Shown here one piece after another: positions 1 to 61,945 of a stretch of DNA of 64,000 bases. The position numbers were made by a program, and so were the translations under genes. The notes beneath the pieces were generated by a model. The model worked only from the letters and a program-made list of their open reading frames with translations. It was not told the DNA's origin and did not search any database. The stretch is from Schmidtea nova (lineage: Eukaryota): the NCBI GenBank assembly GCA_044892505.1, contig CM097883.1:310868001-310932000 (forward strand), given 5' to 3'. How positions within the stretch are numbered: the stretch's first letter is position 1; every line of letters begins with the position of its first letter.

Positions 1-1
1 C

Positions 2-79
2 GCAAGTGATACGGACGAAAGTGACTTGGACGAAGTTGACACTGACGAAAGTGACACGGACGAAGAAAGTGAAAATTAG
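2..79 (+). CDS. 3' end of RING/acidic-tail gene, copy 0 (partial; allele state lies outside the window)
   Basis: Reads ASDTDESDLDEVDTDESDTDEESEN-TAG, identical to the tail of the other copies. Confidence 0.5.
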   Translation, partial: ASDTDESDLDEVDTDESDTDEESEN

Positions 80-849
80 TATCAAAATGTTATCATCAAT
101 ATAGAATAGGTTTGATAAATTAGGCTAATTGAAACTTCTTTCATGAAAAGATGATTCTTCCTTGAGTTTACTTTGCATTTATATTAGAATATTAAACGTT
201 TTCTGGGTATTGGTGATATTTGCGCTATTTATATTTGTATTTTGTTTTAATATTACTGCTCTTTATATATGAATAATACAAGAACTGCTGATTGTTTTGA
301 TATTTTAGACTAAAGGTTTATCAGGATATCGAAAGTGTGTTGGGAATCTATGAAATATCTGTTTTTTAATTATATTATTTTTATTATTATTAATATTACT
401 ATTATTGAAATTTTTATTATTTTTGATAATTTTAAACTTTTTTTATCATAAATACTAATTCTTTTAAAATCATTGAAGTAAAAAACAAAAAATACACTTA
501 ACGTCATTAGGATTTGTAATAATTATATATAGATATAACAATTTTCAATTAAATACATGGATGGTCGACTCGACTTTTACAATTATTTCAAATATTTTAT
601 TTTATGCTTGGCCTCCACAAACCAGTTATCCATTTCGTAAAAGTATTATTAGTTATGAGACTACAGCTGTTACCACCTTATAAATGTATTTTATCTGTAA
701 CATAAATGTAGTATATATGAAGTGGAATATGAAATCTTTTTTTCTCATGCATCCGTTTCATATGATTAATCGTATATCGTTAAAATTTCAAAATCTTTCT
801 TTTCTTTATCTTGCAAAGTACTTACGTAATTGTTTGATCCACGTTTCCG

Positions 850-851
<2 letters not shown>

Positions 852-905
<54 letters not shown>
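852..905. repeat. (AT)n microsatellite, one per unit, ending 316 bp upstream of each ATG; (AT)27 here, range 12-31
   Basis: Directly visible; accounts for nearly all unit-length variation. Confidence 0.98.
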
Positions 906-908
<3 letters not shown>

Positions 909-1177
909 ACGAAATGGAACATGGCTCCGTTTTCAATTCGTAAAATCGAATACAAGTGGAAGTTCTCATGGAATTTTTATCTTTTTGACAACAACACCGT
1001 CGTTTTTCAGTTTTTTCATCTTATACCTTGTAGTTGATAATTGAGTTTCACACTTTCAAAGATAACGTAAATCCATCTGCTTTTATTTAATTTTTAATTA
1101 CTTTTTATTGGTTTAAAGTGTTAAAGTAATCAGAATTCGACACTATTTATGTACGTTATTATATGAATTTTGACTAC

Positions 1178-1184
1178 TATAAAA
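1178..1184 (+). promoter_or_regulatory. Candidate TATA box (TATAAAA), present in every unit 43 bp upstream of the ATG
   Basis: Canonical motif at plausible spacing; ATG in AAAATG context. AT-rich background weakens the inference. Confidence 0.5.
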
Positions 1185-1220
1185 TAACGAGATAAAATTA
1201 AGAGTAAAGTGAAATTTAAA

Positions 1221-1547
1221 ATGTCAACTATACATTGTAGCATTTGTTTAGAAAATTGTTCGACTTCATTTGCAAAGTTATCTGAATGTCGTCATGAATT
1301 CTGTGAGAGTTGTATCAAAGGCTGGATGAAATATTCTTCTACGTGTCCATTAGATAGATCAGTAACTAAAACGTTAATTATATACAACAATCCTGTAGAA
1401 AGAACTATAAAAGATACTATTACTGTTAAACCTAAATCTTCAAACGACAACGACGACGACGATGACGATAATTATGAGTCACAATTCTTCGAATATGACT
1501 TGGCATATTATTTGACGGCTGATGATCATGAATTGGATGATGAATAA
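1221..1547 (+). CDS. RING-finger (C3HC3D) protein, truncated allele, 108 aa, copy 1
   Basis: Intact RING motif; TAA at codon 109; the frame downstream still encodes the acidic tail. ATG is 12 nt after the GTG used by the ORF track. Confidence 0.62.
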   Translation: MSTIHCSICLENCSTSFAKLSECRHEFCESCIKGWMKYSSTCPLDRSVTKTLIIYNNPVERTIKDTITVKPKSSNDNDDDDDDNYESQFFEYDLAYYLTADDHELDDE

Positions 1548-1817
1548 GGTAGCGATTTTGAGGTTGATTCAGATGAAGAAGAAGAAAGTGACACAGACGC
1601 AAGTTACACTGACGAAAGTGAAACAGACGCAAGTGATACGGACGAAAGTGACTTGGACGAAGTTGACACTGACGAAAGTGACACGGACGAAGAAAGTGAA
1701 AATTAGTATCAAAATGTTATCATCAATATAGAATAGGTTTGATAAATTAGGCTAATTGAAACTTCTTTCATGAAAAGATGATTCTTCCTTGAGTTTACTT
1801 TGCATTTATATTAGAAT

Positions 1818-1823
1818 ATTAAA
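1818..1823 (+). terminator. Candidate poly(A) signal ATTAAA, in every unit
   Basis: 112 bp after the full-length stop position and followed by a GT/T-rich tract. Confidence 0.35.
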
Positions 1824-2478
1824 CGTTTTCTGGGTATTGGTGATATTTGCGCTATTTATATTTGTATTTTGTTTTAATATTACTGCTCTTTATATATGAA
1901 TAATACAAGAACTGCTGATTGTTTTGATATTTTAGACTAAAGGTTTATCAGGATATCGAAAGTGTGTTGGGAATCTATGAAATATCTGTTTTTTAATTAT
2001 ATTATTTTTATTATTATTAATATTATTATTATTGAAATTTTTATTATTTTTGATAATTTTAAACTTTTTTTATCATAAATACTAATACTTTTAAAATCAT
2101 TGAAGTAAAAAACAAAAAATACACTTAACGTCATTAGGATTTGTAATAATTATATATAGATATAACAATTTTCAATTAAATACATGGATGGTCGACTCGA
2201 CTTTTACAATTATTTCAAATATTTTATTTTATGCTTGGCCTCCACAAACCAGTTATCCATTTCGTAAAAGTATTATTAGTTATGAGACTACAGCTGTTAC
2301 CACCTTATAAATGTATTTTATCTGTAACATAAATGTAGTATATATGAAGTGGAATATGAAATCTTTTTTTCTCATGCATCCGTTTCATATGATTAATCGT
2401 ATATCGTTAAAATTTCAAAATCTTTCTTTTCTTTATCTTGCAAAGTACTTACGTAATTGTTTGATCCACGTTTCCGTC

Positions 2479-2509
<31 letters not shown>

Positions 2510-2821
2510 ACGAAATGGAACATGGCTCCGTTTTCAATTCGTAAAATCGAATACAAGTGGAAGTTCTCATGGAATTTTTATCTTTTTGACAACAACACCG
2601 TCGTTTTTCAGTTTTTTCATCTTATACCTTGTAGTTGATAATTGAGTTTCACACTTTCAAAGATAACGTAAATCCATCTGCTTTTATTTAATTTTTAATT
2701 ACTTTTTATTGGTTTAAAGTGTTAAAGTAATCAGAATTCGACACTATTTATGTACGTTATTATATGAATTTTGACTACTATAAAATAACGAGATAAAATT
2801 AAGAGTAAAGTGAAATTTAAA

Positions 2822-3307
2822 ATGTCAACTATACATTGTAGCATTTGTTTAGAAAATTGTTCGACTTCATTTGCAAAGTTATCTGAATGTCGTCATGAAT
2901 TCTGTGAGAGTTGTATCAAAGGCTGGATGAAATATTCTTCTACGTGTCCATTAGATAGATCAGTAACTAAAACGTTAATTATATACAACAATCCTGTAGA
3001 AAGAACTATAAAAGATACTATTACTGTTAAACCTAAATCTTCAAACGACAACGACGACGACGATGACGATAATTATGAGTCACAATTCTTCGAATATGAC
3101 TTGGCATATTATTTGACGGCTGATGATCATGAATTGGATGATGAATCAGGTAGCGATTTTGAGGTTGATTCAGATGAAGAAGAAGAAAGTGACACAGGCG
3201 CAAGTTACACTGACGAAAGTGAAACAGACGCAAGTGATACGGACGAAAGTGACTTGGACGAAGTTGACACTGACGAAAGTGACACGGACGAAGAAAGTGA
3301 AAATTAG
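2822..3307 (+). CDS. RING-finger (C3HC3D) putative E3 ubiquitin ligase with acidic tail, full-length 161 aa, copy 2
   Basis: CSIC-x13-CRHEFCESC-x10-CPLD motif; conserved RING Trp (KGW); D/E/S/T-rich C-terminus; TCA at codon 109. Confidence 0.87.
   Translation: MSTIHCSICLENCSTSFAKLSECRHEFCESCIKGWMKYSSTCPLDRSVTKTLIIYNNPVERTIKDTITVKPKSSNDNDDDDDDNYESQFFEYDLAYYLTADDHELDDESGSDFEVDSDEEEESDTGASYTDESETDASDTDESDLDEVDTDESDTDEESEN
3185..3304 (+). repeat. Coding 15-bp (5-aa) degenerate repeat x8 forming the acidic tail; present in every unit
   Basis: ESDTG ASYTD ESETD ASDTD ESDLD EVDTD ESDTD EESEN. Confidence 0.85.
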
Positions 3308-4077
3308 TATCAAAATGTTATCATCAATATAGAATAGGTTTGATAAATTAGGCTAATTGAAACTTCTTTCATGAAAAGATGATTCTTCCTTGAGTTTACT
3401 TTGCATTTATATTAGAATATTAAACGTTTTCTGGGTATTGGTGATATTTGCGCTATTTATATTTTTATTTTGTTTTAATATTACTGCTCTTTATATATGA
3501 ATAATACAAGAACTGCTGATTGTTTTGATATTTTAGACTAAAGGTTTATCAGGATATCGAAAGTGTGTTGGGAATCTATGAAATATCTGTTTTTTAATTA
3601 TATTATTTTTATTATTATTAATATTATTATTATTGAAATTTTTATTATTTTTGATAATTTTAAACTTTTTTTATCATAAATACTAATACTTTTAAAATCA
3701 TTGAAGTAAAAAACAAAAAATACACTTAACGTCATTAGGATTTGTAATAATTATATATAGATATAACAATTTTCAATTAAATACATGGATGGTCGACTCG
3801 ACTTTTACAATTATTTCAAATATTTTATTTTATGCTTGGCCTCCACAAACCAGTTATCCATTTCGTAAAAGTATTATTAGTTATGAGACTACAGCTGTTA
3901 CCACCTTATAAATGTATTTTATCTGTAACATAAATGTAGTATATATGAAGTGGAATATGAAATCTTTTTTTCTCATGCATCCGTTTCATATGATTAATCG
4001 TATATCGTTAAAATTTCAAAATCTTTCTTTTCTTTATCTTGCAAAGTACTTACGTAATTGTTTGATCCACGTTTCCG

Positions 4078-4128
<51 letters not shown>

Positions 4129-4440
4129 ACGAAATGGAACATGGCTCCGTTTTCAATTCGTAAAATCGAATACAAGTGGAAGTTCTCATGGAATTTTTAT
4201 CTTTTTGACAACAACACCGTCGTTTTTCAGTTTTTTCATCTTATACCTTGTAGTGGATAATTGAGTTTCACACTTTCAAAGATAACGTAAATCCATCTGC
4301 TTTTATTTAATTTTTAATTACTTTTTATTGGTTTAAAGTGTTAAAGTAATCAGAATTCGACACTATTTATGTACGTTATTATATGAATTTTGACTACTAT
4401 AAAATAACGAGATAAAATTAAGAGTAAAGTGAAATTTAAA

Positions 4441-4767
4441 ATGTCAACTATACATTGTAGCATTTGTTTAGAAAATTGTTCGACTTCATTTGCAAAGTTA
4501 TCTGAATGTCGTCATGAATTCTGTGAGAGTTGTATCAAAGGCTGGATGAAATATTCTTCTACGTGTCCATTAGATAGATCAGTAACTAAAACGTTAATTA
4601 TATACAACAATCCTGTAGAAAGAACTATAAAAGATACTATTACTGTTAAACCTAAATCTTCAAACGACAACGACGACGACGATGACGATAATTATGAGTC
4701 ACAATTCTTCGAATATGACTTGGCATATTATTTGACGGCTGATGATCATGAATTGGATGATGAATAA
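4441..4767 (+). CDS. RING protein, truncated allele, copy 3
   Basis: Same ORF, TAA at codon 109. Confidence 0.62.
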   Translation: MSTIHCSICLENCSTSFAKLSECRHEFCESCIKGWMKYSSTCPLDRSVTKTLIIYNNPVERTIKDTITVKPKSSNDNDDDDDDNYESQFFEYDLAYYLTADDHELDDE

Positions 4768-5696
4768 GGTAGCGATTTTGAGGTTGATTCAGATGAAGAA
4801 GAAGAAAGTGACACAGACGCAAGTTACACTGACGAAAGTGAAACAGACGCAAGTGATACGGACGAAAGTGACTTGGACGAAGTTGACACTGACGAAAGTG
4901 ACACGGACGAAGAAAGTGAAAATTAGTATCAAAATGTTATCATCAATATAGAATAGGTTTGATAAATTAGGCTAATTGAAACTTCTTTCATGAAAAGATG
5001 ATTCTTCCTTGAGTTTACTTTGCATTTATATTAGAATATTAAACGTTTTCTGGGTATTGGTGATATTTGCGCTATTTATATTTGTATTTTGTTTTAATAT
5101 TACTGCTCTTTATATATGAATAATACAAGAACTGCTGATTGTTTTGATATTTTAGACTAAAGGTTTATCAGGATATCGAAAGTGTGTTGGGAATCTATGA
5201 AATATCTGTTTTTTAATTATATTATTTTTATTATTATTAATATTACTATTATTGAAATTTTTATTATTTTTGATAATTTTAAACTTTTTTTATCATAAAT
5301 ACTAATTCTTTTAAAATCATTGAAGTAAAAAACAAAAAATACACTTAACGTCATTAGGATTTGTAATAATTATATATAGATATAACAATTTTCAATTAAA
5401 TACATGGATGGTCGACTCGACTTTTACAATTATTTCAAATATTTTATTTTATGCTTGGCCTCCACAAACCAGTTATCCATTTCGTAAAAGTATTATTAGT
5501 TATGAGACTACAGCTGTTACCACCTTATAAATGTATTTTATCTGTAACATAAATGTAGTATATATGAAGTGGAATATGAAATCTTTTTTTCTCATGCATC
5601 CGTTTCATATGATTAATCGTATATCGTTAAAATTTCAAAATCTTTCTTTTCTTTATCTTGCAAAGTACTTACGTAATTGTTTGATCCACGTTTCCG

Positions 5697-5755
<59 letters not shown>

Positions 5756-6067
5756 ACGAAATGGAACATGGCTCCGTTTTCAATTCGTAAAATCGAATAC
5801 AAGTGGAAGTTCTCATGGAATTTTTATCTTTTTGACAACAACACCGTCGTTTTTCAGTTTTTTCATCTTATACCTTGTAGTTGATAATTGAGTTTCACAC
5901 TTTCAAAGATAACGTAAATCCATCTGCTTTTATTTAATTTTTAATTACTTTTTATTGGTTTAAAGTGTTAAAGTAATCAGAATTCGACACTATTTATGTA
6001 CGTTATTATATGAATTTTGACTACTATAAAATAACGAGATAAAATTAAGAGTAAAGTGAAATTTAAA

Positions 6068-6394
6068 ATGTCAACTATACATTGTAGCATTTGTTTAGAA
6101 AATTGTTCGACTTCATTTGCAAAGTTATCTGAATGTCGTCATGAATTCTGTGAGAGTTGTATCAAAGGCTGGATGAAATATTCTTCTACGTGTCCATTAG
6201 ATAGATCAGTAACTAAAACGTTAATTATATACAACAATCCTGTAGAAAGAACTATAAAAGATACTATTACTGTTAAACCTAAATCTTCAAACGACAACGA
6301 CGACGACGATGACGATAATTATGAGTCACAATTCTTCGAATATGACTTGGCATATTATTTGACGGCTGATGATCATGAATTGGATGATGAATAA
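6068..6394 (+). CDS. RING protein, truncated allele, copy 4
   Basis: Same ORF, TAA at codon 109. Confidence 0.62.
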   Translation: MSTIHCSICLENCSTSFAKLSECRHEFCESCIKGWMKYSSTCPLDRSVTKTLIIYNNPVERTIKDTITVKPKSSNDNDDDDDDNYESQFFEYDLAYYLTADDHELDDE

Positions 6395-7325
6395 GGTAGC
6401 GATTTTGAGGTTGATTCAGATGAAGAAGAAGAAAGTGACACAGACGCAAGTTACACTGACGAAAGTGAAACAGACGCAAGTGATACGGACGAAAGTGACT
6501 TGGACGAAGTTGACACTGACGAAAGTGACACGGACGAAGAAAGTGAAAATTAGTATCAAAATGTTATCATCAATATAGAATAGGTTTGATAAATTAGGCT
6601 AATTGAAACTTCTTTCATGAAAAGATGATTCTTCCTTGAGTTTACTTTGCATTTATATTAGAATATTAAACGTTTTCTGGGTATTGGTGATATTTGCGCT
6701 ATTTATATTTGTATTTTGTTTTAATATTACTGCTCTTTATATATGAATAATACAAGAACTGCTGATTGTTTTGATATTTTAGACTAAAGGTTTATCAGGA
6801 TATCGAAAGTGTGTTGGGAATCTATGAAATATCTGTTTTTTAATTATATTATTTTTATTATTATTAATATTATTATTATTGAAATTTTTATTATTTTTGA
6901 TAATTTTAAACTTTTTTTATCATAAATACTAATACTTTTAAAATCATTGAAGTAAAAAACAAAAAATACACTTAACGTCATTAGGATTTGTAATAATTAT
7001 ATATAGATATAACAATTTTCAATTAAATACATGGATGGTCGACTCGACTTTTACAATTATTTCAAATATTTTATTTTATGCTTGGCCTCCACAAACCAGT
7101 TATCCATTTCGTAAAAGTATTATTAGTTATGAGACTACAGCTGTTACCACCTTATAAATGTATTTTATCTGTAACATAAATGTAGTATATATGAAGTGGA
7201 ATATGAAATCTTTTTTTCTCATGCATCCGTTTCATATGATTAATCGTATATCGTTAAAATTTCAAAATCTTTCTTTTCTTTATCTTGCAAAGTACTTACG
7301 TAATTGTTTGATCCACGTTTCCGTC

Positions 7326-7356
<31 letters not shown>

Positions 7357-7668
7357 ACGAAATGGAACATGGCTCCGTTTTCAATTCGTAAAATCGAATA
7401 CAAGTGGAAGTTCTCATGGAATTTTTATCTTTTTGACAACAACACCGTCGTTTTTCAGTTTTTTCATCTTATACCTTGTAGTTGATAATTGAGTTTCACA
7501 CTTTCAAAGATAACGTAAATCCATCTGCTTTTATTTAATTTTTAATTACTTTTTATTGGTTTAAAGTGTTAAAGTAATCAGAATTCGACACTATTTATGT
7601 ACGTTATTATATGAATTTTGACTACTATAAAATAACGAGATAAAATTAAGAGTAAAGTGAAATTTAAA

Positions 7669-7995
7669 ATGTCAACTATACATTGTAGCATTTGTTTAGA
7701 AAATTGTTCGACTTCATTTGCAAAGTTATCTGAATGTCGTCATGAATTCTGTGAGAGTTGTATCAAAGGCTGGATGAAATATTCTTCTACGTGTCCATTA
7801 GATAGATCAGTAACTAAAACGTTAATTATATACAACAATCCTGTAGAAAGAACTATAAAAGATACTATTACTGTTAAACCTAAATCTTCAAACGACAACG
7901 ACGACGACGATGACGATAATTATGAGTCACAATTCTTCGAATATGACTTGGCATATTATTTGACGGCTGATGATCATGAATTGGATGATGAATAA
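7669..7995 (+). CDS. RING protein, truncated allele, copy 5
   Basis: Same ORF, TAA at codon 109. Confidence 0.62.
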   Translation: MSTIHCSICLENCSTSFAKLSECRHEFCESCIKGWMKYSSTCPLDRSVTKTLIIYNNPVERTIKDTITVKPKSSNDNDDDDDDNYESQFFEYDLAYYLTADDHELDDE

Positions 7996-9267
7996 GGTAG
8001 CGATTTTGAGGTTGATTCAGATGAAGAAGAAGAAAGTGACACAGACGCAAGTTACACTGACGAAAGTGAAACAGACGCAAGTGATACGGACGAAAGTGAC
8101 TTGGACGAAGTTGACACTGACGAAAGTGACACGGACGAAGAAAGTGAAAATTAGTATCAAAATGTTATCATCAATATAGAATAGGTTTGATAAATTAGGC
8201 TAATTGAAACTTCTTTCATGAAAAGATGATTCTTCCTTGAGTTTACTTTGCATTTATATTAGAATATTAAACGTTTTCTGGGTATTGGTGATATTTGCGC
8301 TATTTATATTTGTATTTTGTTTTAATATTACTGCTCTTTATATATGAATAATACAAGAACTGCTGATTGTTTTGATATTTTAGACTAAAGGTTTATCAGG
8401 ATATCGAAAGTGTGTTGGGAATCTATGAAATATCTGTTTTTTAATTATATTATTTTTATTATTATTAATATTATTATTATTGAAATTTTTATTATTTTTG
8501 ATAATTTTAAACTTTTTTTATCATAAATACTAATACTTTTAAAATCATTGAAGTAAAAAACAAAAAATACACTTAACGTCATTAGGATTTGTAATAATTA
8601 TATATAGATATAACAATTTTCAATTAAATACATGGATGGTCGACTCGACTTTTACAATTATTTCAAATATTTTATTTTATGCTTGGCCTCCACAAACCAG
8701 TTATCCATTTCGTAAAAGTATTATTAGTTATGAGACTACAGCTGTTACCACCTTATAAATGTATTTTATCTGTAACATAAATGTAGTATATATGAAGTGG
8801 AATATGAAATCTTTTTTTCTCATGCATCCGTTTCATATGATTAATCGTATATCGTTAAAATTTCAAAATCTTTCTTTTCTTTATCTTGCAAAGTACTTAC
8901 GTAATTGTTTGATCCACGTTTCCGTCATATATATATATATATATATATATATTTAACGAAATGGAACATGGCTCCGTTTTCAATTCGTAAAATCGAATAC
9001 AAGTGGAAGTTCTCATGGAATTTTTATCTTTTTGACAACAACACCGTCGTTTTTCAGTTTTTTCATCTTATACCTTGTAGTTGATAATTGAGTTTCACAC
9101 TTTCAAAGATAACGTAAATCCATCTGCTTTTATTTAATTTTTAATTACTTTTTATTGGTTTAAAGTGTTAAAGTAATCAGAATTCGACACTATTTATGTA
9201 CGTTATTATATGAATTTTGACTACTATAAAATAACGAGATAAAATTAAGAGTAAAGTGAAATTTAAA

Positions 9268-9753
9268 ATGTCAACTATACATTGTAGCATTTGTTTAGAA
9301 AATTGTTCGACTTCATTTGCAAAGTTATCTGAATGTCGTCATGAATTCTGTGAGAGTTGTATCAAAGGCTGGATGAAATATTCTTCTACGTGTCCATTAG
9401 ATAGATCAGTAACTAAAACGTTAATTATATACAACAATCCTGTAGAAAGAACTATAAAAGATACTATTACTGTTAAACCTAAATCTTCAAACGACAACGA
9501 CGACGACGATGACGATAATTATGAGTCACAATTCTTCGAATATGACTTGGCATATTATTTGACGGCTGATGATCATGAATTGGATGATGAATCAGGTAGC
9601 GATTTTGAGGTTGATTCAGATGAAGAAGAAGAAAGTGACACAGGCGCAAGTTACACTGACGAAAGTGAAACAGACGCAAGTGATACGGACGAAAGTGACT
9701 TGGACGAAGTTGACACTGACGAAAGTGACACGGACGAAGAAAGTGAAAATTAG
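9268..9753 (+). CDS. RING protein, full-length, copy 6
   Basis: Same ORF, TCA at codon 109. Confidence 0.87.
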   Translation: MSTIHCSICLENCSTSFAKLSECRHEFCESCIKGWMKYSSTCPLDRSVTKTLIIYNNPVERTIKDTITVKPKSSNDNDDDDDDNYESQFFEYDLAYYLTADDHELDDESGSDFEVDSDEEEESDTGASYTDESETDASDTDESDLDEVDTDESDTDEESEN

Positions 9754-10523: not shown

Positions 10524-10572
<49 letters not shown>

Positions 10573-12140: not shown

Positions 12141-12187
<47 letters not shown>

Positions 12188-44310: not shown

Positions 44311-44313
<3 letters not shown>

Positions 44314-44645
44314 CATAATTATCTTTTTTCACCTTTGATCTTTTTTTATTATTATTATCAATAATTCTCATAATGACTATAGATCAAAATTTTTTTTTAT
44401 AAACAATAACACAATATTTCGGCACAGCCTTTATCAAGTGTGTATTTATTATTATCAATAATTCTCATAATGACTATAGATCAAAATTTTTTTTTATAAA
44501 CAATAACACAATATTTCGGCACAGCCTTTATCAAGTGTGTATTTCTCAAATACACACTTGATAAAGGCTGTGCCGAAATATTGTGTTATTGTTTATAAAA
44601 AAAAATTTTGATCTATAGTCATTATGAGAATTATTGATAATAATA
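44311..44645. other. 335-bp foreign insertion within the (AT)n tract: unique 37 bp + A (100 bp) + A' (97 bp) + CTC + reverse complement of A
   Basis: Unit length 1962 = 1573 + (AT)16 + (AT)11 + 335. 44348-44447 is repeated at 44448-44544 and inverted at 44548-44647. Confidence 0.95.
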
Positions 44646-44982
44646 ATATATATATATATATATATATTTAACGAAATGGAACATGGCTCCGTTTTCAATT
44701 CGTAAAATCGAATACAAGTGGAAGTTCTCATGGAATTTTTATCTTTTTGACAACAACACCGTCGTTTTTCAGTTTTTTCATCTTATACCTTGTAGTTGAT
44801 AATTGAGTTTCACACTTTCAAAGATAACGTAAATCCATCTGCTTTTATTTAATTTTTAATTACTTTTTATTGGTTTAAAGTGTTAAAGTAATCAGAATTC
44901 GACACTATTTATGTACGTTATTATATGAATTTTGACTACTATAAAATAACGAGATAAAATTAAGAGTAAAGTGAAATTTAAA

Positions 44983-49461: not shown

Positions 49462-49492
<31 letters not shown>

Positions 49493-51060: not shown

Positions 51061-51115
<55 letters not shown>

Positions 51116-51427: not shown

Positions 51428-51754
51428 ATGTCAACTATACATTGTAGCATTTGTTTAGAAAATTGTTCGACTTCATTTGCAAAGTTATCTGAATGTCGTC
51501 ATGAATTCTGTGAGAGTTGTATCAAAGGCTGGATGAAATATTCTTCTACGTGTCCATTAGATAGATCAGTAACTAAAACGTTAATTATATACAACAATCC
51601 TGTAGAAAGAACTATAAAAGATACTATTACTGTTAAACCTAAATCTTCAAACGACAACGACGACGACGATGACGATAATTATGAGTCACAATTCTTCGAA
51701 TATGACTTGGCATATTATTTGACGGCTGATGATCATGAATTGGATGATGAATAA
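51428..51754 (+). CDS. RING protein, truncated allele, copy 32
   Basis: Same ORF, TAA at codon 109. Confidence 0.62.
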   Translation: MSTIHCSICLENCSTSFAKLSECRHEFCESCIKGWMKYSSTCPLDRSVTKTLIIYNNPVERTIKDTITVKPKSSNDNDDDDDDNYESQFFEYDLAYYLTADDHELDDE

Positions 51755-52683
51755 GGTAGCGATTTTGAGGTTGATTCAGATGAAGAAGAAGAAAGTGACA
51801 CAGACGCAAGTTACACTGACGAAAGTGAAACAGACGCAAGTGATACGGACGAAAGTGACTTGGACGAAGTTGACACTGACGAAAGTGACACGGACGAAGA
51901 AAGTGAAAATTAGTATCAAAATGTTATCATCAATATAGAATAGGTTTGATAAATTAGGCTAATTGAAACTTCTTTCATGAAAAGATGATTCTTCCTTGAG
52001 TTTACTTTGCATTTATATTAGAATATTAAACGTTTTCTGGGTATTGGTGATATTTGCGCTATTTATATTTGTATTTTGTTTTAATATTACTGCTCTTTAT
52101 ATATGAATAATACAAGAACTGCTGATTGTTTTGATATTTTAGACTAAAGGTTTATCAGGATATCGAAAGTGTGTTGGGAATCTATGAAATATCTGTTTTT
52201 TAATTATATTATTTTTATTATTATTAATATTATTATTATTGAAATTTTTATTATTTTTGATAATTTTAAACTTTTTTTATCATAAATACTAATACTTTTA
52301 AAATCATTGAAGTAAAAAACAAAAAATACACTTAACGTCATTAGGATTTGTAATAATTATATATAGATATAACAATTTTCAATTAAATACATGGATGGTC
52401 GACTCGACTTTTACAATTATTTCAAATATTTTATTTTATGCTTGGCCTCCACAAACCAGTTATCCATTTCGTAAAAGTATTATTAGTTATGAGACTACAG
52501 CTGTTACCACCTTATAAATGTATTTTATCTGTAACATAAATGTAGTATATATGAAGTGGAATATGAAATCTTTTTTTCTCATGCATCCGTTTCATATGAT
52601 TAATCGTATATCGTTAAAATTTCAAAATCTTTCTTTTCTTTATCTTGCAAAGTACTTACGTAATTGTTTGATCCACGTTTCCG

Positions 52684-52726
<43 letters not shown>

Positions 52727-53038
52727 ACGAAATGGAACATGGCTCCGTTTTCAATTCGTAAAATCGAATACAAGTGGAAGTTCTCATGGAATTTTTATCT
52801 TTTTGACAACAACACCGTCGTTTTTCAGTTTTTTCATCTTATACCTTGTAGTTGATAATTGAGTTTCACACTTTCAAAGATAACGTAAATCCATCTGCTT
52901 TTATTTAATTTTTAATTACTTTTTATTGGTTTAAAGTGTTAAAGTAATCAGAATTCGACACTATTTATGTACGTTATTATATGAATTTTGACTACTATAA
53001 AATAACGAGATAAAATTAAGAGTAAAGTGAAATTTAAA

Positions 53039-53365
53039 ATGTCAACTATACATTGTAGCATTTGTTTAGAAAATTGTTCGACTTCATTTGCAAAGTTATC
53101 TGAATGTCGTCATGAATTCTGTGAGAGTTGTATCAAAGGCTGGATGAAATATTCTTCTACGTGTCCATTAGATAGATCAGTAACTAAAACGTTAATTATA
53201 TACAACAATCCTGTAGAAAGAACTATAAAAGATACTATTACTGTTAAACCTAAATCTTCAAACGACAACGACGACGACGATGACGATAATTATGAGTCAC
53301 AATTCTTCGAATATGACTTGGCATATTATTTGACGGCTGATGATCATGAATTGGATGATGAATAA
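53039..53365 (+). CDS. RING protein, truncated allele, copy 33
   Basis: Same ORF, TAA at codon 109. Confidence 0.62.
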   Translation: MSTIHCSICLENCSTSFAKLSECRHEFCESCIKGWMKYSSTCPLDRSVTKTLIIYNNPVERTIKDTITVKPKSSNDNDDDDDDNYESQFFEYDLAYYLTADDHELDDE

Positions 53366-54635
53366 GGTAGCGATTTTGAGGTTGATTCAGATGAAGAAGA
53401 AGAAAGTGACACAGACGCAAGTTACACTGACGAAAGTGAAACAGACGCAAGTGATACGGACGAAAGTGACTTGGACGAAGTTGACACTGACGAAAGTGAC
53501 ACGGACGAAGAAAGTGAAAATTAGTATCAAAATGTTATCATCAATATAGAATAGGTTTGATAAATTAGGCTAATTGAAACTTCTTTCATGAAAAGATGAT
53601 TCTTCCTTGAGTTTACTTTGCATTTATATTAGAATATTAAACGTTTTCTGGGTATTGGTGATATTTGCGCTATTTATATTTGTATTTTGTTTTAATATTA
53701 CTGCTCTTTATATATGAATAATACAAGAACTGCTGATTGTTTTGATATTTTAGACTAAAGGTTTATCAGGATATCGAAAGTGTGTTGGGAATCTATGAAA
53801 TATCTGTTTTTTAATTATATTATTTTTATTATTATTAATATTACTATTATTGAAATTTTTATTATTTTTGATAATTTTAAACTTTTTTTATCATAAATAC
53901 TAATTCTTTTAAAATCATTGAAGTAAAAAACAAAAAATACACTTAACGTCATTAGGATTTGTAATAATTATATATAGATATAACAATTTTCAATTAAATA
54001 CATGGATGGTCGACTCGACTTTTACAATTATTTCAAATATTTTATTTTATGCTTGGCCTCCACAAACCAGTTATCCATTTCGTAAAAGTATTATTAGTTA
54101 TGAGACTACAGCTGTTACCACCTTATAAATGTATTTTATCTGTAACATAAATGTAGTATATATGAAGTGGAATATGAAATCTTTTTTTCTCATGCATCCG
54201 TTTCATATGATTAATCGTATATCGTTAAAATTTCAAAATCTTTCTTTTCTTTATCTTGCAAAGTACTTACGTAATTGTTTGATCCACGTTTCCGTCATAT
54301 ATATATATATATATATATATTTAATGAAATGGAACATGGCTCCGTTTTCAATTCGTAAAATCGAATACAAGTGGAAGTTCTCATGGAATTTTTATCTTTT
54401 TGACAACAACACCGTCGTTTTTCAGTTTTTTCATCTTATACCTTGTAGTTGATAATTGAGTTTCACACTTTCAAAGATAACGTAAATCCATCTGCTTTTA
54501 TTTAATTTTTAATTACTTTTTATTGGTTTAAAGTGTTAAAGTAATCAGAATTCGACACTATTTATGTACGTTATTATATGAATTTTGACTACTATAAAAT
54601 AACGAGATAAAATTAAGAGTAAAGTGAAATTTAAA

Positions 54636-55121
54636 ATGTCAACTATACATTGTAGCATTTGTTTAGAAAATTGTTCGACTTCATTTGCAAAGTTATCTGA
54701 ATGTCGTCATGAATTCTGTGAGAGTTGTATCAAAGGCTGGATGAAATATTCTTCTACGTGTCCATTAGATAGATCAGTAACTAAAACGTTAATTATATAC
54801 AACAATCCTGTAGAAAGAACTATAAAAGATACTATTACTGTTAAACCTAAATCTTCAAACGACAACGACGACGACGATGACGATAATTATGAGTCACAAT
54901 TCTTCGAATATGACTTGGCATATTATTTGACGGCTGATGATCATGAATTGGATGATGAATCAGGTAGCGATTTTGAGGTTGATTCAGATGAAGAAGAAGA
55001 AAGTGACACAGGCGCAAGTTACACTGACGAAAGTGAAACAGACGCAAGTGATACGGACGAAAGTGACTTGGACGAAGTTGACACTGACGAAAGTGACACG
55101 GACGAAGAAAGTGAAAATTAG
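54636..55121 (+). CDS. RING protein, full-length, copy 34
   Basis: Same ORF, TCA at codon 109. Confidence 0.87.
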   Translation: MSTIHCSICLENCSTSFAKLSECRHEFCESCIKGWMKYSSTCPLDRSVTKTLIIYNNPVERTIKDTITVKPKSSNDNDDDDDDNYESQFFEYDLAYYLTADDHELDDESGSDFEVDSDEEEESDTGASYTDESETDASDTDESDLDEVDTDESDTDEESEN

Positions 55122-56234
55122 TATCAAAATGTTATCATCAATATAGAATAGGTTTGATAAATTAGGCTAATTGAAACTTCTTTCATGAAAAGATGATTCT
55201 TCCTTGAGTTTACTTTGCATTTATATTAGAATATTAAACGTTTTCTGGGTATTGGTGATATTTGCGCTATTTATATTTTTATTTTGTTTTAATATTACTG
55301 CTCTTTATATATGAATAATACAAGAACTGCTGATTGTTTTGATATTTTAGACTAAAGGTTTATCAGGATATCGAAAGTGTGTTGGGAATCTATGAAATAT
55401 CTGTTTTTTAATTATATTATTTTTATTATTATTAATATTATTATTATTGAAATTTTTATTATTTTTGATAATTTTAAACTTTTTTTATCATAAATACTAA
55501 TACTTTTAAAATCATTGAAGTAAAAAACAAAAAATACACTTAACGTCATTAGGATTTGTAATAATTATATATAGATATAACAATTTTCAATTAAATACAT
55601 GGATGGTCGACTCGACTTTTACAATTATTTCAAATATTTTATTTTATGCTTGGCCTCCACAAACCAGTTATCCATTTCGTAAAAGTATTATTAGTTATGA
55701 GACTACAGCTGTTACCACCTTATAAATGTATTTTATCTGTAACATAAATGTAGTATATATGAAGTGGAATATGAAATCTTTTTTTCTCATGCATCCGTTT
55801 CATATGATTAATCGTATATCGTTAAAATTTCAAAATCTTTCTTTTCTTTATCTTGCAAAGTACTTACGTAATTGTTTGATCCACGTTTCCGTCATATATA
55901 TATATATATATATATATATTTAATGAAATGGAACATGGCTCCGTTTTCAATTCGTAAAATCGAATACAAGTGGAAGTTCTCATGGAATTTTTATCTTTTT
56001 GACAACAACACCGTCGTTTTTCAGTTTTTTCATCTTATACCTTGTAGTTGATAATTGAGTTTCACACTTTCAAAGATAACGTAAATCCATCTGCTTTTAT
56101 TTAATTTTTAATTACTTTTTATTGGTTTAAAGTGTTAAAGTAATCAGAATTCGACACTATTTATGTACGTTATTATATGAATTTTGACTACTATAAAATA
56201 ACGAGATAAAATTAAGAGTAAAGTGAAATTTAAA

Positions 56235-56720
56235 ATGTCAACTATACATTGTAGCATTTGTTTAGAAAATTGTTCGACTTCATTTGCAAAGTTATCTGAA
56301 TGTCGTCATGAATTCTGTGAGAGTTGTATCAAAGGCTGGATGAAATATTCTTCTACGTGTCCATTAGATAGATCAGTAACTAAAACGTTAATTATATACA
56401 ACAATCCTGTAGAAAGAACTATAAAAGATACTATTACTGTTAAACCTAAATCTTCAAACGACAACGACGACGACGATGACGATAATTATGAGTCACAATT
56501 CTTCGAATATGACTTGGCATATTATTTGACGGCTGATGATCATGAATTGGATGATGAATCAGGTAGCGATTTTGAGGTTGATTCAGATGAAGAAGAAGAA
56601 AGTGACACAGGCGCAAGTTACACTGACGAAAGTGAAACAGACGCAAGTGATACGGACGAAAGTGACTTGGACGAAGTTGACACTGACGAAAGTGACACGG
56701 ACGAAGAAAGTGAAAATTAG
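56235..56720 (+). CDS. RING protein, full-length, copy 35
   Basis: Same ORF, TCA at codon 109. Confidence 0.87.
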   Translation: MSTIHCSICLENCSTSFAKLSECRHEFCESCIKGWMKYSSTCPLDRSVTKTLIIYNNPVERTIKDTITVKPKSSNDNDDDDDDNYESQFFEYDLAYYLTADDHELDDESGSDFEVDSDEEEESDTGASYTDESETDASDTDESDLDEVDTDESDTDEESEN

Positions 56721-57490
56721 TATCAAAATGTTATCATCAATATAGAATAGGTTTGATAAATTAGGCTAATTGAAACTTCTTTCATGAAAAGATGATTCTT
56801 CCTTGAGTTTACTTTGCATTTATATTAGAATATTAAACGTTTTCTGGGTATTGGTGATATTTGCGCTATTTATATTTTTATTTTGTTTTAATATTACTGC
56901 TCTTTATATATGAATAATACAAGAACTGCTGATTGTTTTGATATTTTAGACTAAAGGTTTATCAGGATATCGAAAGTGTGTTGGGAATCTATGAAATATC
57001 TGTTTTTTAATTATATTATTTTTATTATTATTAATATTATTATTATTGAAATTTTTATTATTTTTGATAATTTTAAACTTTTTTTATCATAAATACTAAT
57101 ACTTTTAAAATCATTGAAGTAAAAAACAAAAAATACACTTAACGTCATTAGGATTTGTAATAATTATATATAGATATAACAATTTTCAATTAAATACATG
57201 GATGGTCGACTCGACTTTTACAATTATTTCAAATATTTTATTTTATGCTTGGCCTCCACAAACCAGTTATCCATTTCGTAAAAGTATTATTAGTTATGAG
57301 ACTACAGCTGTTACCACCTTATAAATGTATTTTATCTGTAACATAAATGTAGTATATATGAAGTGGAATATGAAATCTTTTTTTCTCATGCATCCGTTTC
57401 ATATGATTAATCGTATATCGTTAAAATTTCAAAATCTTTCTTTTCTTTATCTTGCAAAGTACTTACGTAATTGTTTGATCCACGTTTCCG

Positions 57491-57531
<41 letters not shown>

Positions 57532-57843
57532 ACGAAATGGAACATGGCTCCGTTTTCAATTCGTAAAATCGAATACAAGTGGAAGTTCTCATGGAATTTT
57601 TATCTTTTTGACAACAACACCGTCGTTTTTCAGTTTTTTCATCTTATACCTTGTAGTTGATAATTGAGTTTCACACTTTCAAAGATAACGTAAATCCATC
57701 TGCTTTTATTTAATTTTTAATTACTTTTTATTGGTTTAAAGTGTTAAAGTAATCAGAATTCGACACTATTTATGTACGTTATTATATGAATTTTGACTAC
57801 TATAAAATAACGAGATAAAATTAAGAGTAAAGTGAAATTTAAA

Positions 57844-58170
57844 ATGTCAACTATACATTGTAGCATTTGTTTAGAAAATTGTTCGACTTCATTTGCAAAG
57901 TTATCTGAATGTCGTCATGAATTCTGTGAGAGTTGTATCAAAGGCTGGATGAAATATTCTTCTACGTGTCCATTAGATAGATCAGTAACTAAAACGTTAA
58001 TTATATACAACAATCCTGTAGAAAGAACTATAAAAGATACTATTACTGTTAAACCTAAATCTTCAAACGACAACGACGACGACGATGACGATAATTATGA
58101 GTCACAATTCTTCGAATATGACTTGGCATATTATTTGACGGCTGATGATCATGAATTGGATGATGAATAA
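57844..58170 (+). CDS. RING protein, truncated allele, copy 36
   Basis: Same ORF, TAA at codon 109. Confidence 0.62.
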   Translation: MSTIHCSICLENCSTSFAKLSECRHEFCESCIKGWMKYSSTCPLDRSVTKTLIIYNNPVERTIKDTITVKPKSSNDNDDDDDDNYESQFFEYDLAYYLTADDHELDDE

Positions 58171-59099
58171 GGTAGCGATTTTGAGGTTGATTCAGATGAA
58201 GAAGAAGAAAGTGACACAGACGCAAGTTACACTGACGAAAGTGAAACAGACGCAAGTGATACGGACGAAAGTGACTTGGACGAAGTTGACACTGACGAAA
58301 GTGACACGGACGAAGAAAGTGAAAATTAGTATCAAAATGTTATCATCAATATAGAATAGGTTTGATAAATTAGGCTAATTGAAACTTCTTTCATGAAAAG
58401 ATGATTCTTCCTTGAGTTTACTTTGCATTTATATTAGAATATTAAACGTTTTCTGGGTATTGGTGATATTTGCGCTATTTATATTTGTATTTTGTTTTAA
58501 TATTACTGCTCTTTATATATGAATAATACAAGAACTGCTGATTGTTTTGATATTTTAGACTAAAGGTTTATCAGGATATCGAAAGTGTGTTGGGAATCTA
58601 TGAAATATCTGTTTTTTAATTATATTATTTTTATTATTATTAATATTACTATTATTGAAATTTTTATTATTTTTGATAATTTTAAACTTTTTTTATCATA
58701 AATACTAATTCTTTTAAAATCATTGAAGTAAAAAACAAAAAATACACTTAACGTCATTAGGATTTGTAATAATTATATATAGATATAACAATTTTCAATT
58801 AAATACATGGATGGTCGACTCGACTTTTACAATTATTTCAAATATTTTATTTTATGCTTGGCCTCCACAAACCAGTTATCCATTTCGTAAAAGTATTATT
58901 AGTTATGAGACTACAGCTGTTACCACCTTATAAATGTATTTTATCTGTAACATAAATGTAGTATATATGAAGTGGAATATGAAATCTTTTTTTCTCATGC
59001 ATCCGTTTCATATGATTAATCGTATATCGTTAAAATTTCAAAATCTTTCTTTTCTTTATCTTGCAAAGTACTTACGTAATTGTTTGATCCACGTTTCCG

Positions 59100-59134
<35 letters not shown>

Positions 59135-59446
59135 ATGAAATGGAACATGGCTCCGTTTTCAATTCGTAAAATCGAATACAAGTGGAAGTTCTCATGGAAT
59201 TTTTATCTTTTTGACAACAACACCGTCGTTTTTCAGTTTTTTCATCTTATACCTTGTAGTTGATAATTGAGTTTCACACTTTCAAAGATAACGTAAATCC
59301 ATCTGCTTTTATTTAATTTTTAATTACTTTTTATTGGTTTAAAGTGTTAAAGTAATCAGAATTCGACACTATTTATGTACGTTATTATATGAATTTTGAC
59401 TACTATAAAATAACGAGATAAAATTAAGAGTAAAGTGAAATTTAAA

Positions 59447-59932
59447 ATGTCAACTATACATTGTAGCATTTGTTTAGAAAATTGTTCGACTTCATTTGCA
59501 AAGTTATCTGAATGTCGTCATGAATTCTGTGAGAGTTGTATCAAAGGCTGGATGAAATATTCTTCTACGTGTCCATTAGATAGATCAGTAACTAAAACGT
59601 TAATTATATACAACAATCCTGTAGAAAGAACTATAAAAGATACTATTACTGTTAAACCTAAATCTTCAAACGACAACGACGATGACGATGACGATAATTA
59701 TGAGTCACAATTCTTCGAATATGACTTGGCATATTATTTGACGGCTGATGATCATGAATTGGATGATGAATCAGGTAGCGATTTTGAGGTTGATTCAGAT
59801 GAAGAAGAAGAAAGTGACACAGGCGCAAGTTACACTGACGAAAGTGAAACAGACGCAAGTGATACGGACGAAAGTGACTTGGACGAAGTTGACACTGACG
59901 AAAGTGACACGGACGAAGAAAGTGAAAATTAG
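59447..59932 (+). CDS. RING protein, full-length, copy 37
   Basis: TCA at codon 109; one synonymous GAC>GAT at 59683. Confidence 0.87.
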   Translation: MSTIHCSICLENCSTSFAKLSECRHEFCESCIKGWMKYSSTCPLDRSVTKTLIIYNNPVERTIKDTITVKPKSSNDNDDDDDDNYESQFFEYDLAYYLTADDHELDDESGSDFEVDSDEEEESDTGASYTDESETDASDTDESDLDEVDTDESDTDEESEN

Positions 59933-60702
59933 TATCAAAATGTTATCATCAATATAGAATAGGTTTGATAAATTAGGCTAATTGAAACTTCTTTCATGAA
60001 AAGATGATTCTTCCTTGAGTTTACTTTGCATTTATATTAGAATATTAAACGTTTTCTGGGTATTGGTGATATTTGCGCTATTTATATTTTTATTTTGTTT
60101 TAATATTACTGCTCTTTATATATGAATAATACAAGAACTGCTGATTGTTTTGATATTATAGACTAAAGGTTTATCAGGATATCGAAAGTGTGTTGGGAAT
60201 CTATGAAATATCTGTTTTTTAATTATATTATTTTTATTATTATTAATATTATTATTATTGAAATTTTTATTATTTTTGATAATTTTAAACTTTTTTTATC
60301 ATAAATACTAATACTTTTAAAATCATTGAAGTAAAAAACAAAAAATACACTTAACGTCATTAGGATTTGTAATAATTATATATAGATATAACAATTTTCA
60401 ATTAAATACATGGATGGTCGACTCGACTTTTACAATTATTTCAAATATTTTATTTTATGCTTGGCCTCCACAAACCAGTTATCCATTTCGTAAAAGTATT
60501 ATTAGTTATGAGACTACAGCTGTTACCACCTTATAAATGTATTTTATCTGTAACATAAATGTAGTATATATGAAGTGGAATATGAAATCTTTTTTTCTCA
60601 TGCATCCGTTTCATATGATTAATCGTATATCGTTAAAATTTCAAAATCTTTCTTTTCTTTATCTTGCAAAGTACTTACGTAATTGTTTGATCCACGTTTC
60701 CG

Positions 60703-60753
<51 letters not shown>

Positions 60754-61065
60754 ACGAAATGGAACATGGCTCCGTTTTCAATTCGTAAAATCGAATACAA
60801 GTGGAAGTTCTCATGGAATTTTTATCTTTTTGACAACAACACCGTCGTTTTTCAGTTTTTTCATCTTATACCTTGTAGTTGATAATTGAGTTTCACACTT
60901 TCAAAGATAACGTAAATCCATCTGCTTTTATTTAATTTTTAATTACTTTTTATTGGTTTAAAGTGTTAAAGTAATCAGAATTCGACACTATTTATGTACG
61001 TTATTATATGAATTTTGACTACTATAAAATAACGAGATAAAATTAAGAGTAAAGTGAAATTTAAA

Positions 61066-61392
61066 ATGTCAACTATACATTGTAGCATTTGTTTAGAAAA
61101 TTGTTCGACTTCATTTGCAAAGTTATCTGAATGTCGTCATGAATTCTGTGAGAGTTGTATCAAAGGCTGGATGAAATATTCTTCTACGTGTCCATTAGAT
61201 AGATCAGTAACTAAAACGTTAATTATATACAACAATCCTGTAGAAAGAACTATAAAAGATACTATTACTGTTAAACCTAAATCTTCAAACGACAACGACG
61301 ACGACGATGACGATAATTATGAGTCACAATTCTTCGAATATGACTTGGCATATTATTTGACGGCTGATGATCATGAATTGGATGATGAATAA
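61066..61392 (+). CDS. RING protein, truncated allele, copy 38 (unit interrupted at 61708)
   Basis: TAA at codon 109; GAA>AAA downstream of the stop. Confidence 0.62.
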   Translation: MSTIHCSICLENCSTSFAKLSECRHEFCESCIKGWMKYSSTCPLDRSVTKTLIIYNNPVERTIKDTITVKPKSSNDNDDDDDDNYESQFFEYDLAYYLTADDHELDDE

Positions 61393-61945
61393 GGTAGCGA
61401 TTTTGAGGTTGATTCAGATGAAAAAGAAGAAAGTGACACAGACGCAAGTTACACTGACGAAAGTGAAACAGACGCAAGTGATACGGACGAAAGTGACTTG
61501 GACGAAGTTGACACTGACGAAAGTGACACGGACGAAGAAAGTGAAAATTAGTATCAAAATGTTATCATCAATATAGAATAGGTTTGATAAATTAGGCTAA
61601 TTGAAACTTCTTTCATGAAAAGATGATTCTTCCTTGAGTTTACTTTGCATTTATATTAGAATATTAAACGTTTTCTGGGTATTGGTGATATTTGCGCTAT
61701 TTATATTTAGTAGGCAGACATGAGGAGCCGGGAACAAAGAACTATTACGTAATCGATGACATAACAAAGAACATACCCCCTCCCCTCCCCTTTTTTTCCA
61801 ACCCCCCCTTTTTTTACATACACACAGACGATGAGTCATAAAAATTTTTTTATGGCGTCATCGATGACTCATTTCAAATTTAAATTTTAAATTTAAATTC
61901 CCAAGGGCCAAATAAGGTCAAACCTTCAAACAAGGGTATCATTCG

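Follow-up and report, generated by a model that had tools for sequence, protein, structure and literature searches.

A young tandem array of intronless RING-finger genes in the planarian Schmidtea nova

Gene-bearing macrosatellites are few and are known mostly from mammals and flies. D4Z4/DUX4, TSPY, Stellate and Sdic are all represented by tens of near-identical tandem copies of a single gene, homogenised by unequal exchange. In humans, the units of the RS447 megasatellite carry the intronless gene of the deubiquitinase USP17 (DUB3) (PMC2874809). Here we describe an array in a planarian genome, analysed in a window of 64,000 nucleotides (the whole stretch of DNA presented above), which resembles RS447 in being a macrosatellite with one intronless ubiquitin-system gene per unit. 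The literature yielded no paper on intronless tandem gene arrays of planarians, and the genome paper (PMC11410931) does not mention them. An earlier note on this DNA had recognised no described example of such an array; this stands for a RING gene, but not for a ubiquitin-system macrosatellite, for which RS447/USP17 is a known case (PMC2874809).

Structure of the array and variation among its copies

A 30-nt anchor placed at the start of the ORF matched 38 times between positions 1219 and 61064 of the window, with spacings of 1597-1635 bp and one single spacing of 1962 bp, and the peaks of k-mer distances fell at 1597-1627. Anchors and k-mer spacing were used because the array is outside the range of TRF, whose longest period is 500. 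As the window opens in the middle of a unit, the 38 copies are a lower bound. The array ends at 61708/61709 and does not resume before 64000. With head-to-tail units of at least 1 kb, tens of copies and one complete gene in each unit, as in other gene-bearing macrosatellites, the locus is a genuine tandem gene array on a large planarian chromosome (Table 1). At least 38 near-identical copies with a period of about 1.6 kb had been proposed in the earlier note, and the anchors and their spacings bear this out; its description of a macrosatellite with a single small intronless RING gene per unit holds as well, an intact ORF being present in each of the 38 copies.

Table 1. Coordinates of the array and of its features within the window
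Feature	Position	Strand	Remark
Head-to-tail array	1..61708	+	partial unit (1-1218) at the start, then 37 full units and a final unit truncated at 61708
Example unit (unit 2)	2820..4438	+	1619 bp
Candidate promoter only, TATAAAA	2779..2785	+	43 nt upstream of ATG
Long-form ORF	2822..3307	+	161 aa; form present in 15 copies
Short-form ORF	1221..1547	+	108 aa, TAA at codon 109; form present in 23 copies
RING finger, residues 5-47	2834..2962	+	C3HC3D, CPLDR; ligands C6 C9 C23 H25 C28 C31 C42 D45
Post-RING beta-hairpin, residues 48-72	2963..3037	+	common to PHRF1-type proteins; predicted strands 51-55, 63-68
Acidic disordered tail, residues 73-161	3038..3304	+	43 D/E, 0 K/R, 20 S/T, 11 S/T-x-x-D/E motifs
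Codon 109, sense/nonsense polymorphism	3146..3148	+	TCA here; TAA in 23 other copies, e.g. 1545-1547
Candidate poly(A) signal only, ATTAAA	3419..3424	+	112 nt past long-form stop
(TA)n microsatellite in spacer	2480..2506	.	11-30 repeats among units; chief source of unit-length differences
Foldback insertion in (TA)n tract, unit 27	44311..44647	.	~337 bp; 97-110-nt segment in two direct copies and one inverted
Synonymous change, unit 37	59683	+	C>T, codon 79 GAC>GAT; sole change within codons 1-108
Non-array flank	61709..62257	.	very high-copy repeat

AATAAA is absent from the unit. No tRNA was found in it, and the Rfam matches were confined to hairpins scoring below threshold, in the foldback insertion and the (TA)n tract; an RNA gene in the unit was therefore rejected. 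Further ORFs were rejected as well, since the other frames overlap the RING gene or run through (TA)n. Neither an integrase or transposase nor an LTR, a TIR or any further ORF is present in the unit.

Only 12 substitution sites were observed across the copies, the remaining differences being the length of the (TA)n tract (19 distinct lengths among units) and the single 337-bp insertion. Three interspersed haplotypes and recombinants between them could be distinguished. With a mean divergence of 0.21%, the array is either young or recently or continually homogenised. Of the variable sites, eight fall within the 1130 bp of spacer and four within the ORF, which measures 486 bp (Fisher p = 0.76). 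Since uniformity is as high in the spacer as in the gene, the identity of the coding sequences reflects youth or homogenisation rather than selection, and the array itself bears no sign of selection, although this comparison rests on few variable sites (12).

Residues 1-105 are identical in all 38 copies. That the RING-coding part would be identical except for one synonymous change (position 59683) was thus correctly noted before. Contrary to the earlier description of one repeated gene, the copies do not all carry the same gene: codon 109 reads TAA in 23 of them and TCA in 15, and the tail varies at codon 120 (E/K) and codon 126 (D/G). The nonsense codon drops the last 53 residues in 60% of copies (23/38); what remains comprises the RING and hairpin plus 36 residues of the acidic tail. 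Up to codon 108, all ORFs are intact, with neither frameshift nor stop (38/38), and in every short copy (23/23) the tail frame beyond codon 109 is otherwise open. In the outgroups, the ORF extends past this point, and its acidic tail is of comparable length. As relatives retain the long tail and the tail frame of the short copies is still open, the stop looks derived. Its presence in 23 copies is best explained by a recent variant spread by array homogenisation, and it argues that the exact dose of the full-length protein is not under tight selection.

The encoded protein and its relatives

The N-terminal domain is a RING finger by sequence and predicted fold. All eight zinc ligands occur with cross-brace spacing in each of the 38 copies; across 23 relatives, C6, C9, C23, H25, C28, C31 and C42 are invariant and D45 nearly so. 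Two Pfam families matched above their cut-offs, zf-RING_2 (35.2 bits, cut-off 27.3) and zf-C3HC4 (32.4, cut-off 21), and the best PDB sequence match was RNF4 (4ap4_A, E 2.5e-7). In the AF2 model, residues 1-72 are predicted with pLDDT >90, and a Foldseek search with this model retrieved the RINGs of RNF4, RING1B, RNF8, RAD18 and RNF12 with a probability of about 1.0 and rmsd of 1.2-1.8 A. All of these are active RING E3s. In the RNF4 alignment, residues I8, W35, P43 and R46 coincide with the expected positions of the E2-contact and linchpin residues of c-Cbl and RNF4. Having these residues is no proof of catalysis, and the product is a putative E3.

Among described proteins, PHRF1 and SCAF11 likewise have an N-terminal RING whose final zinc ligand is Asp (CPxD, then R). 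CPxD was present in 65 of 108 parsed top matches, and homology of PHRF1/SCAF11 to the array protein runs approximately 25-30 residues beyond the RING; in RING+PHD proteins, the profile matches extend to positions 68-79. The best long matches carry a PHD finger or a SCAF11-like C-terminal domain, one of them being named PHRF1 (Hymenolepis), and a PHD finger is present in relatives P0006, P0012, P0013, P0040, P0102 and P0123. Judged by these sequence features, the RING is of PHRF1/SCAF11 type.

Similar small proteins proved rare: just five were found among billions searched, all encoded on short environmental contigs. Identity reaches 62% in the closest relative (P0001), whose architecture is the same; the other four (P0003, P0015, P0023 and P0037) share the layout of RING plus acidic tail. 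A word-based protein search detected one relative, a profile built from the six members added none, and a metagenome scan revealed nothing beyond an already known contig. The exact 161-aa product is absent from the gene-position collection. No terminal overlaps or internal repeats were seen on the relatives' short contigs, which speaks neither for nor against a tandem arrangement there. Within the family, DNA-level alignment is confined to the coding part. Compared with the closest relative, dN/dS was about 0.17 for codons 1-78 and 0.30 for the RING, with dS near saturation; on the basis of these sequences, the gene family is real and under purifying selection between species. In a tree of the 76-residue region, P0001 is the partner of the array protein, and the remaining four acidic-tail proteins group in one clade (100/100); the base of the tree supports neither monophyly nor non-monophyly of the six. 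By sequence, the array gene marks out a small-protein branch of the PHRF1/SCAF11 RING type that had no name before.

Origin and possible function of the array

We favour, with a probability of roughly 0.6, a genuine, young or homogenised array of RING genes from a rare family, in which each copy is most likely an independent Pol II gene. A 1.6-kb unit with one intronless gene would have been amplified to at least 38 copies, and unequal crossing-over together with gene conversion would keep these uniform, a process to which the (TA)n tract of every spacer may contribute. The protein consists of three parts: i) an N-terminal C3HC3D RING of PHRF1/SCAF11 type, which would most likely bind E2~ubiquitin, ii) a short beta-hairpin, and iii) a long acidic, S/T-rich disordered tail, which would engage basic partners or be regulated by phosphorylation. 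We infer that the genes are probably transcribed, that their product probably acts as an E3, that the acidic tail may have a role of its own, and that copy number may be of benefit. The amplification had earlier been regarded as recent and dosage-driven. A recent date, or a recent homogenisation, agrees with the 0.21% divergence, but the role of dosage is an assumption, the spacer being equally conserved and the nonsense codon present in 23 of 38 copies.

These last two observations would also fit an inert or decaying satellite, a reading that is possible but on balance unlikely. A small gene might have been caught together with its surroundings in a tandem amplification, its copies being silent or useless and their ORFs intact merely through youth, while the function resides in a single-copy parent gene elsewhere. 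The lack of a canonical poly(A) signal points in the same direction. On the other hand, codons 1-108 are free of frameshifts and stops in all 38 copies, purifying selection acts on the family between species, and even the short form keeps its RING, hairpin and 36 residues of the acidic tail.

A wider extension of the independent-gene reading can be offered only tentatively, by analogy with mammalian cleavage-stage arrays (DUX, USP17L, TRIM43/49). The planarian genome might harbour a class of young macrosatellites, each amplifying a nuclear-regulator gene that is intact and free of introns. The RING array could then be transcribed in a burst, for example in the germline, in early embryos or in stem cells, its numerous templates supplying a short-lived acidic E3 ligase, or it could be one side of a genomic conflict.

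Conflict as the force maintaining copy number, as in an arms race over meiotic drive, viruses or transposons with the RING as a dosage-sensitive weapon or decoy, seems improbable to us. It takes up the role in meiotic drive, antiviral or anti-TE defence that the earlier note had suggested as an example. It draws only on the parallel with Stellate, Sdic and comparable arrays, to which the extreme youth of the array may be added; small RING proteins are also common in viruses, so that a counterpart or decoy in the host could be imagined. However, no positive selection was detected (dN/dS 0.17-0.30 versus the closest relative), the unit lacks a paired suppressor repeat and has neither an antisense ORF nor an RNA gene, and the planarian host is a hermaphrodite without sex chromosomes.

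Even less credible is an artefact, in which the assembler inflated a few true copies into a long array. Near-identical 1.6-kb repeats are indeed hard to order, and the assembly was produced from HiFi reads with canu (PMC11410931), so the copy order and exact number are not guaranteed in an array of 99.8% identity. Nevertheless, the interspersed haplotypes, the recombinants and the (TA)11-30 variation speak against collapse or expansion during assembly: the copies can be told apart by a private insertion, by 19 different lengths of the (TA)n tract and by the three haplotypes with their recombinants. Moreover, Logan contigs from four separate Tn5 libraries, belonging to one study and probably to the same strain, cover the whole unit (ORF and spacer) and join position 61558 back to 59940, which represents the tandem junction. 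Their k-mer depth was 124-188 for unit contigs versus 7.5 for an exact-match flank contig (run X4), which is a rough indication and gives no copy number. All runs found to contain the array sequence behave like DNA.

Least probable of all is a cargo gene of giant-virus or transposon origin within an integrated or amplified element. In favour of it, the language-model clusters nearest to the protein consist of small Nucleocytoviricota RING proteins (score <=0.88), and the relatives reside on short AT-rich environmental contigs. Against it, the matches on viral contigs (IMG/VR) are generic RINGs only (residues 6-47, 29-48% identity, none with hairpin or tail), and a viral origin was rejected on these grounds. 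The unit is also devoid of integrase, transposase, LTR, TIR and other ORFs, and among relatives that bear a name the closest are PHRF1-type proteins of animals, tapeworms included.

Comparison with known systems

The array represents a macrosatellite of a ubiquitin-ligase-type gene in a regenerating flatworm. If expressed, it would provide a natural system for the interplay of copy number, homogenisation and partial inactivation, with a stop codon sweeping through the array; if silent, it would be a clean example of a satellite born from a gene. This small-protein branch of PHRF1/SCAF11-type RINGs would be cheap to assay biochemically.

At the level of the protein, the best fold match is RNF4 (2xeu_A, rmsd 1.8 A over 56 columns), in which the Arg following the last ligand is conserved. 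The RNF4 RING, however, is C-terminal and ends in Cys instead of Asp, and RNF4 dimerises via its C-terminus, with SUMO-interaction motifs preceding the RING. PHRF1 and SCAF11 share the RING type and exceed 1000 aa, whereas the array protein has 161 or 108 aa. It shows neither a PHD finger (no Pfam match, no further Cys/His cluster) nor a SCAF11-like/SRI-type C-terminal domain (no match to PF23030) or an Arg/Ser-rich region. Instead, its acidic tail follows straight after the RING region, and its gene, unlike those of PHRF1/SCAF11, is intronless and tandemly amplified.

At the level of the array, RS447/USP17 differs in encoding a deubiquitinase and not a RING protein, in its unit of 4.7 kb and in its mammalian host, and also in its documented expression and copy-number variation. 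D4Z4/DUX4, TSPY, Stellate and Sdic are likewise tandem near-identical copies of a single gene, belonging to other gene classes. Several of them have ties to sex chromosomes, germline conflict or cleavage-stage activation.

Uniformity of the array units

The window is evenly AT-rich (G+C 26-30%), and k-mer self-distances within the array peak at 1597-1627 bp. A 30-nt anchor at the ORF start was found 38 times, first at 1219 and last at 61064, with spacings of 1597-1635 bp and a single exception of 1962 bp. Because the window opens in the middle of a unit (1-1218), 38 copies represent a minimum on the left side; the right edge is abrupt (61708/61709). The array is located in the interior of a very large chromosome, not at its end.

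Multiple alignment of all units revealed 12 substitution columns in ~1600 bp, the mean pairwise divergence being 0.21% and the maximum 8 differences. Three features account for the differences in unit length: the (TA)n tract (11-30 repeats), an indel of one base and, in unit 27, a foldback insertion of 337 bp. In this insertion, a 97-nt segment occurs twice in direct orientation without mismatch and then once inverted, which yields a perfect hairpin of 99 nt around a 3-nt loop; it could represent a small foldback/MITE-like element, a palindrome generated by replication or an artefact of long reads. The earlier note had claimed a single, synonymous change in the RING-coding part at 59683, and this was confirmed as C>T in codon 79 (GAC>GAT). 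As for the distribution of variable sites, 8 were present in 1130 bp of spacer versus 4 in 486 bp of the long ORF (Fisher p = 0.76), and codons 1-108 contained one in 324 bp versus 11 elsewhere (p = 0.48). Gene and spacer being equally uniform, the coding identity among copies reflects an array that is very young or under active homogenisation, and is no sign of selection on the protein. That the whole array is an inert, newly born satellite is the serious rival explanation.

Two forms of the protein are encoded. At codon 109, 23 copies read TAA and encode 108 aa, and the other 15 read TCA and encode 161 aa; codons 120 (E/K) and 126 (D/G) of the tail are also polymorphic. The remaining 52 codons are open in 23/23 short copies, and ORFs of the relatives run on through acidic tails of comparable length. 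From these two observations, the long form is most likely ancestral, and TAA most likely a recent mutation spread by homogenisation to 60% of the copies in the window. A stop codon at such frequency is hard to square with tight dose selection on the full-length protein. The short form retains the RING, the hairpin that follows it and 36 residues of the acidic tail.

Each unit contains one credible ORF; the other listed ORFs overlap the RING ORF in other frames or traverse the (TA)n tract. A candidate promoter (TATAAAA) is located 43 nt 5' of the ATG. AATAAA is absent from the unit, and a candidate poly(A) signal, ATTAAA, lies 112 nt 3' of the long-form stop. Scans of the unit detected no tRNA and no Rfam family above threshold. 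The microRNA-like Rfam matches below threshold correspond to the (TA)n tract and to the palindromic foldback of unit 27, whose hairpin accounts for the match to mir-31. The role in conflict or defence that the earlier note proposed is neither favoured nor contradicted. No positive selection is apparent, and the unit contains neither an antisense partner nor a small-RNA feature.

Authenticity and right flank of the array

The assembly was produced from HiFi reads with canu (PMC11410931), and with units 99.8% identical their exact order and number are not guaranteed. The array as such is unlikely to be an assembly artefact. Its units represent three main haplotypes and several recombinants, mixed with no fixed higher-order period, and (TA)n length changes from unit to unit, a pattern that simple assembler duplication would not produce. 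Moreover, of the words sampled from a unit, 93-94% occur in four public runs of one 2024 study. Their Logan contigs, compared over 59940-62250, span ORF and spacer equally and join 61558 back to 59940, i.e. they contain the head-to-tail junction. The mean k-mer depth of array contigs was 124-188 and that of an exact-match flank contig (61761-61843) was 7.5 in one of the four runs (X4); such depths are not copy numbers and were taken only as consistent with many copies. Because the Tn5 mosaic-end adapter was found among loose contig ends, and S. nova ATAC-seq of normal and irradiated animals forms part of the four-species Schmidtea genome paper (PMC11410931), we infer that the four runs are those ATAC-seq libraries, i.e. 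DNA.

At the stop/sense site (61391 and equivalents), the assembled contigs of all four runs carry C (TCA, long form); as a contig keeps one path only, this shows the presence of the long form in the reads, not its frequency. Within the window, unlike in these contigs, TAA is the majority variant.

A very high-copy repeat element bounds or interrupts the array on its right side, and array sequence does not recur between 61709 and 64000. Summed contig depth of this repeat reached 3x10^5 to 6x10^5 at 61812-62045 in the four runs, versus ~150 for the array, and many variant joints were present in its contigs. The 147-aa ORF further into the flank may be a part of the flanking repeat element. Every copy of the 13-bp tandem repeat contains TGACTCA.

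Coordinates of features in the window and of ORFs in the contigs of the relatives (L001, L002, L004, L005)
Feature	Sequence	Position	Strand	Remarks
Foldback insertion	window	44311-44647		inside (TA)n tract of unit 27; 337 bp
High-copy repeat	window	61709-62257		directly 3' of array
13-bp tandem repeat ATGACTCATCAGT	window	62258-62827		~44 copies, 65-bp higher order
147-aa ORF	window	63053-63496	-	flank
(TAA)n microsatellite	window	63938-64000		window end
ORF of relative	L001	287-763		
ORF of relative	L002	320-769		
ORF of relative	L004	38-700		
ORF of relative	L005	131-637		

The RING protein and its relatives

Residues 5-47 matched Pfam zf-RING_2 with 35.2 bits (cut-off 27.3), and zf-C3HC4 was matched too. 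The zinc ligands are C6, C9, C23, H25, C28, C31, C42 and D45, the final ligand being an Asp within CPLDR. The solved structures that matched best by sequence were RNF4 (E 2.5e-7), HRD1, RING1B/BMI1 and the RING of equine herpesvirus-1. A viral or mobile-element origin of the gene is unlikely, as viral contigs match the generic RING core only, giant-virus RING neighbours found with a language model score below evidence level, and the unit is devoid of element-type genes or termini.

An AlphaFold2 model, built with an alignment of 23 relatives as input, contains the RING and a two-stranded hairpin (51-55, 63-68) with pLDDT >90 over residues 1-72, while residues 73-161 are disordered. In Foldseek, the ordered part retrieved the RINGs of RNF4, RING1B, RNF8, RAD18 and RNF12, all of them active ligases, with rmsd of 1.2-1.8 A and probability ~1 (with weak E-values, as the small size of the domain would lead one to expect). 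Residues I8, W35, P43 and R46, which from the alignment with RNF4 we take to be the E2-contact and linchpin positions of c-Cbl/RNF4, would be compatible with an active E3. In the tail (73-161), 43 residues are Asp/Glu and 20 are Ser/Thr, Lys/Arg are absent, and S/T-x-x-D/E motifs number 11; the tail is strongly acidic and probably phosphorylated. In the long form it includes DEVD at residues 146-149 (window 3257-3268), the classical caspase-3-type cleavage motif, which may well occur by chance in so acidic a tail.

Among 5.8 billion proteins, a word-based search detected a sole relative, P0001 (158 aa, 62% identity, same layout), encoded on a 1755-bp contig of 22% G+C from a public run. A profile searched exhaustively against 1.84 billion representatives yielded 1745 RING matches. 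Only four small proteins among them (P0003, P0015, P0023 and P0037) match from residue 1 to ~75, share the layout of small RING plus acidic tail, and come from short, AT-rich contigs of metagenome assemblies or public sequencing runs. Each of the five relatives is encoded by a single ORF without introns on a contig of 0.8-1.8 kb, originating from soil or other metagenomes or from unlabelled runs; these contigs showed no sign of tandem organisation.

The best long matches were RING+PHD proteins, several of them with a SCAF11-like C-terminal domain and one, from a tapeworm, named PHRF1. CPxD terminates the RING in 65 of the 108 top matches with a parsable RING. In the alignment, the acidic tail starts where PHRF1-type proteins enter the PHD finger, which bears out a separate earlier suggestion of a resemblance between the RING and the N-terminus of PHRF1/SCAF11. 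Unlike members of that family, the window protein has no PHD, RS region or C-terminal domain, and we class it as having a RING of PHRF1/SCAF11 type rather than as an orthologue of PHRF1. In a tree of the 76-residue region, it paired with P0001 and the other four relatives grouped together (100/100); a single six-member clade was neither supported nor rejected. Between the window gene and P0001, dN/dS was 0.17 over codons 1-78 and 0.30 over the RING, with dS near saturation, and their DNA could be aligned in the RING-coding 138 bp only. Low dN/dS together with coding-only DNA alignment indicates that the family was kept protein-coding over a long divergence. These proteins appear to constitute a so far unnamed family of small RING-plus-acidic-tail proteins.

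Comparison with known arrays

Gene-bearing macrosatellites are already known, for example DUX4 in D4Z4, TSPY, Stellate and others. The ubiquitin system is represented among them by RS447, a megasatellite with intronless genes for the deubiquitinase USP17 (PMC2874809). No literature on planarian gene-bearing macrosatellites of this sort was found, and such arrays are not discussed in the Schmidtea genome paper (PMC11410931). The array would be of much greater interest if a particular cell type or stage proved to transcribe it. With its one small gene per unit, the S. nova RING array joins the known class of gene-bearing macrosatellites.
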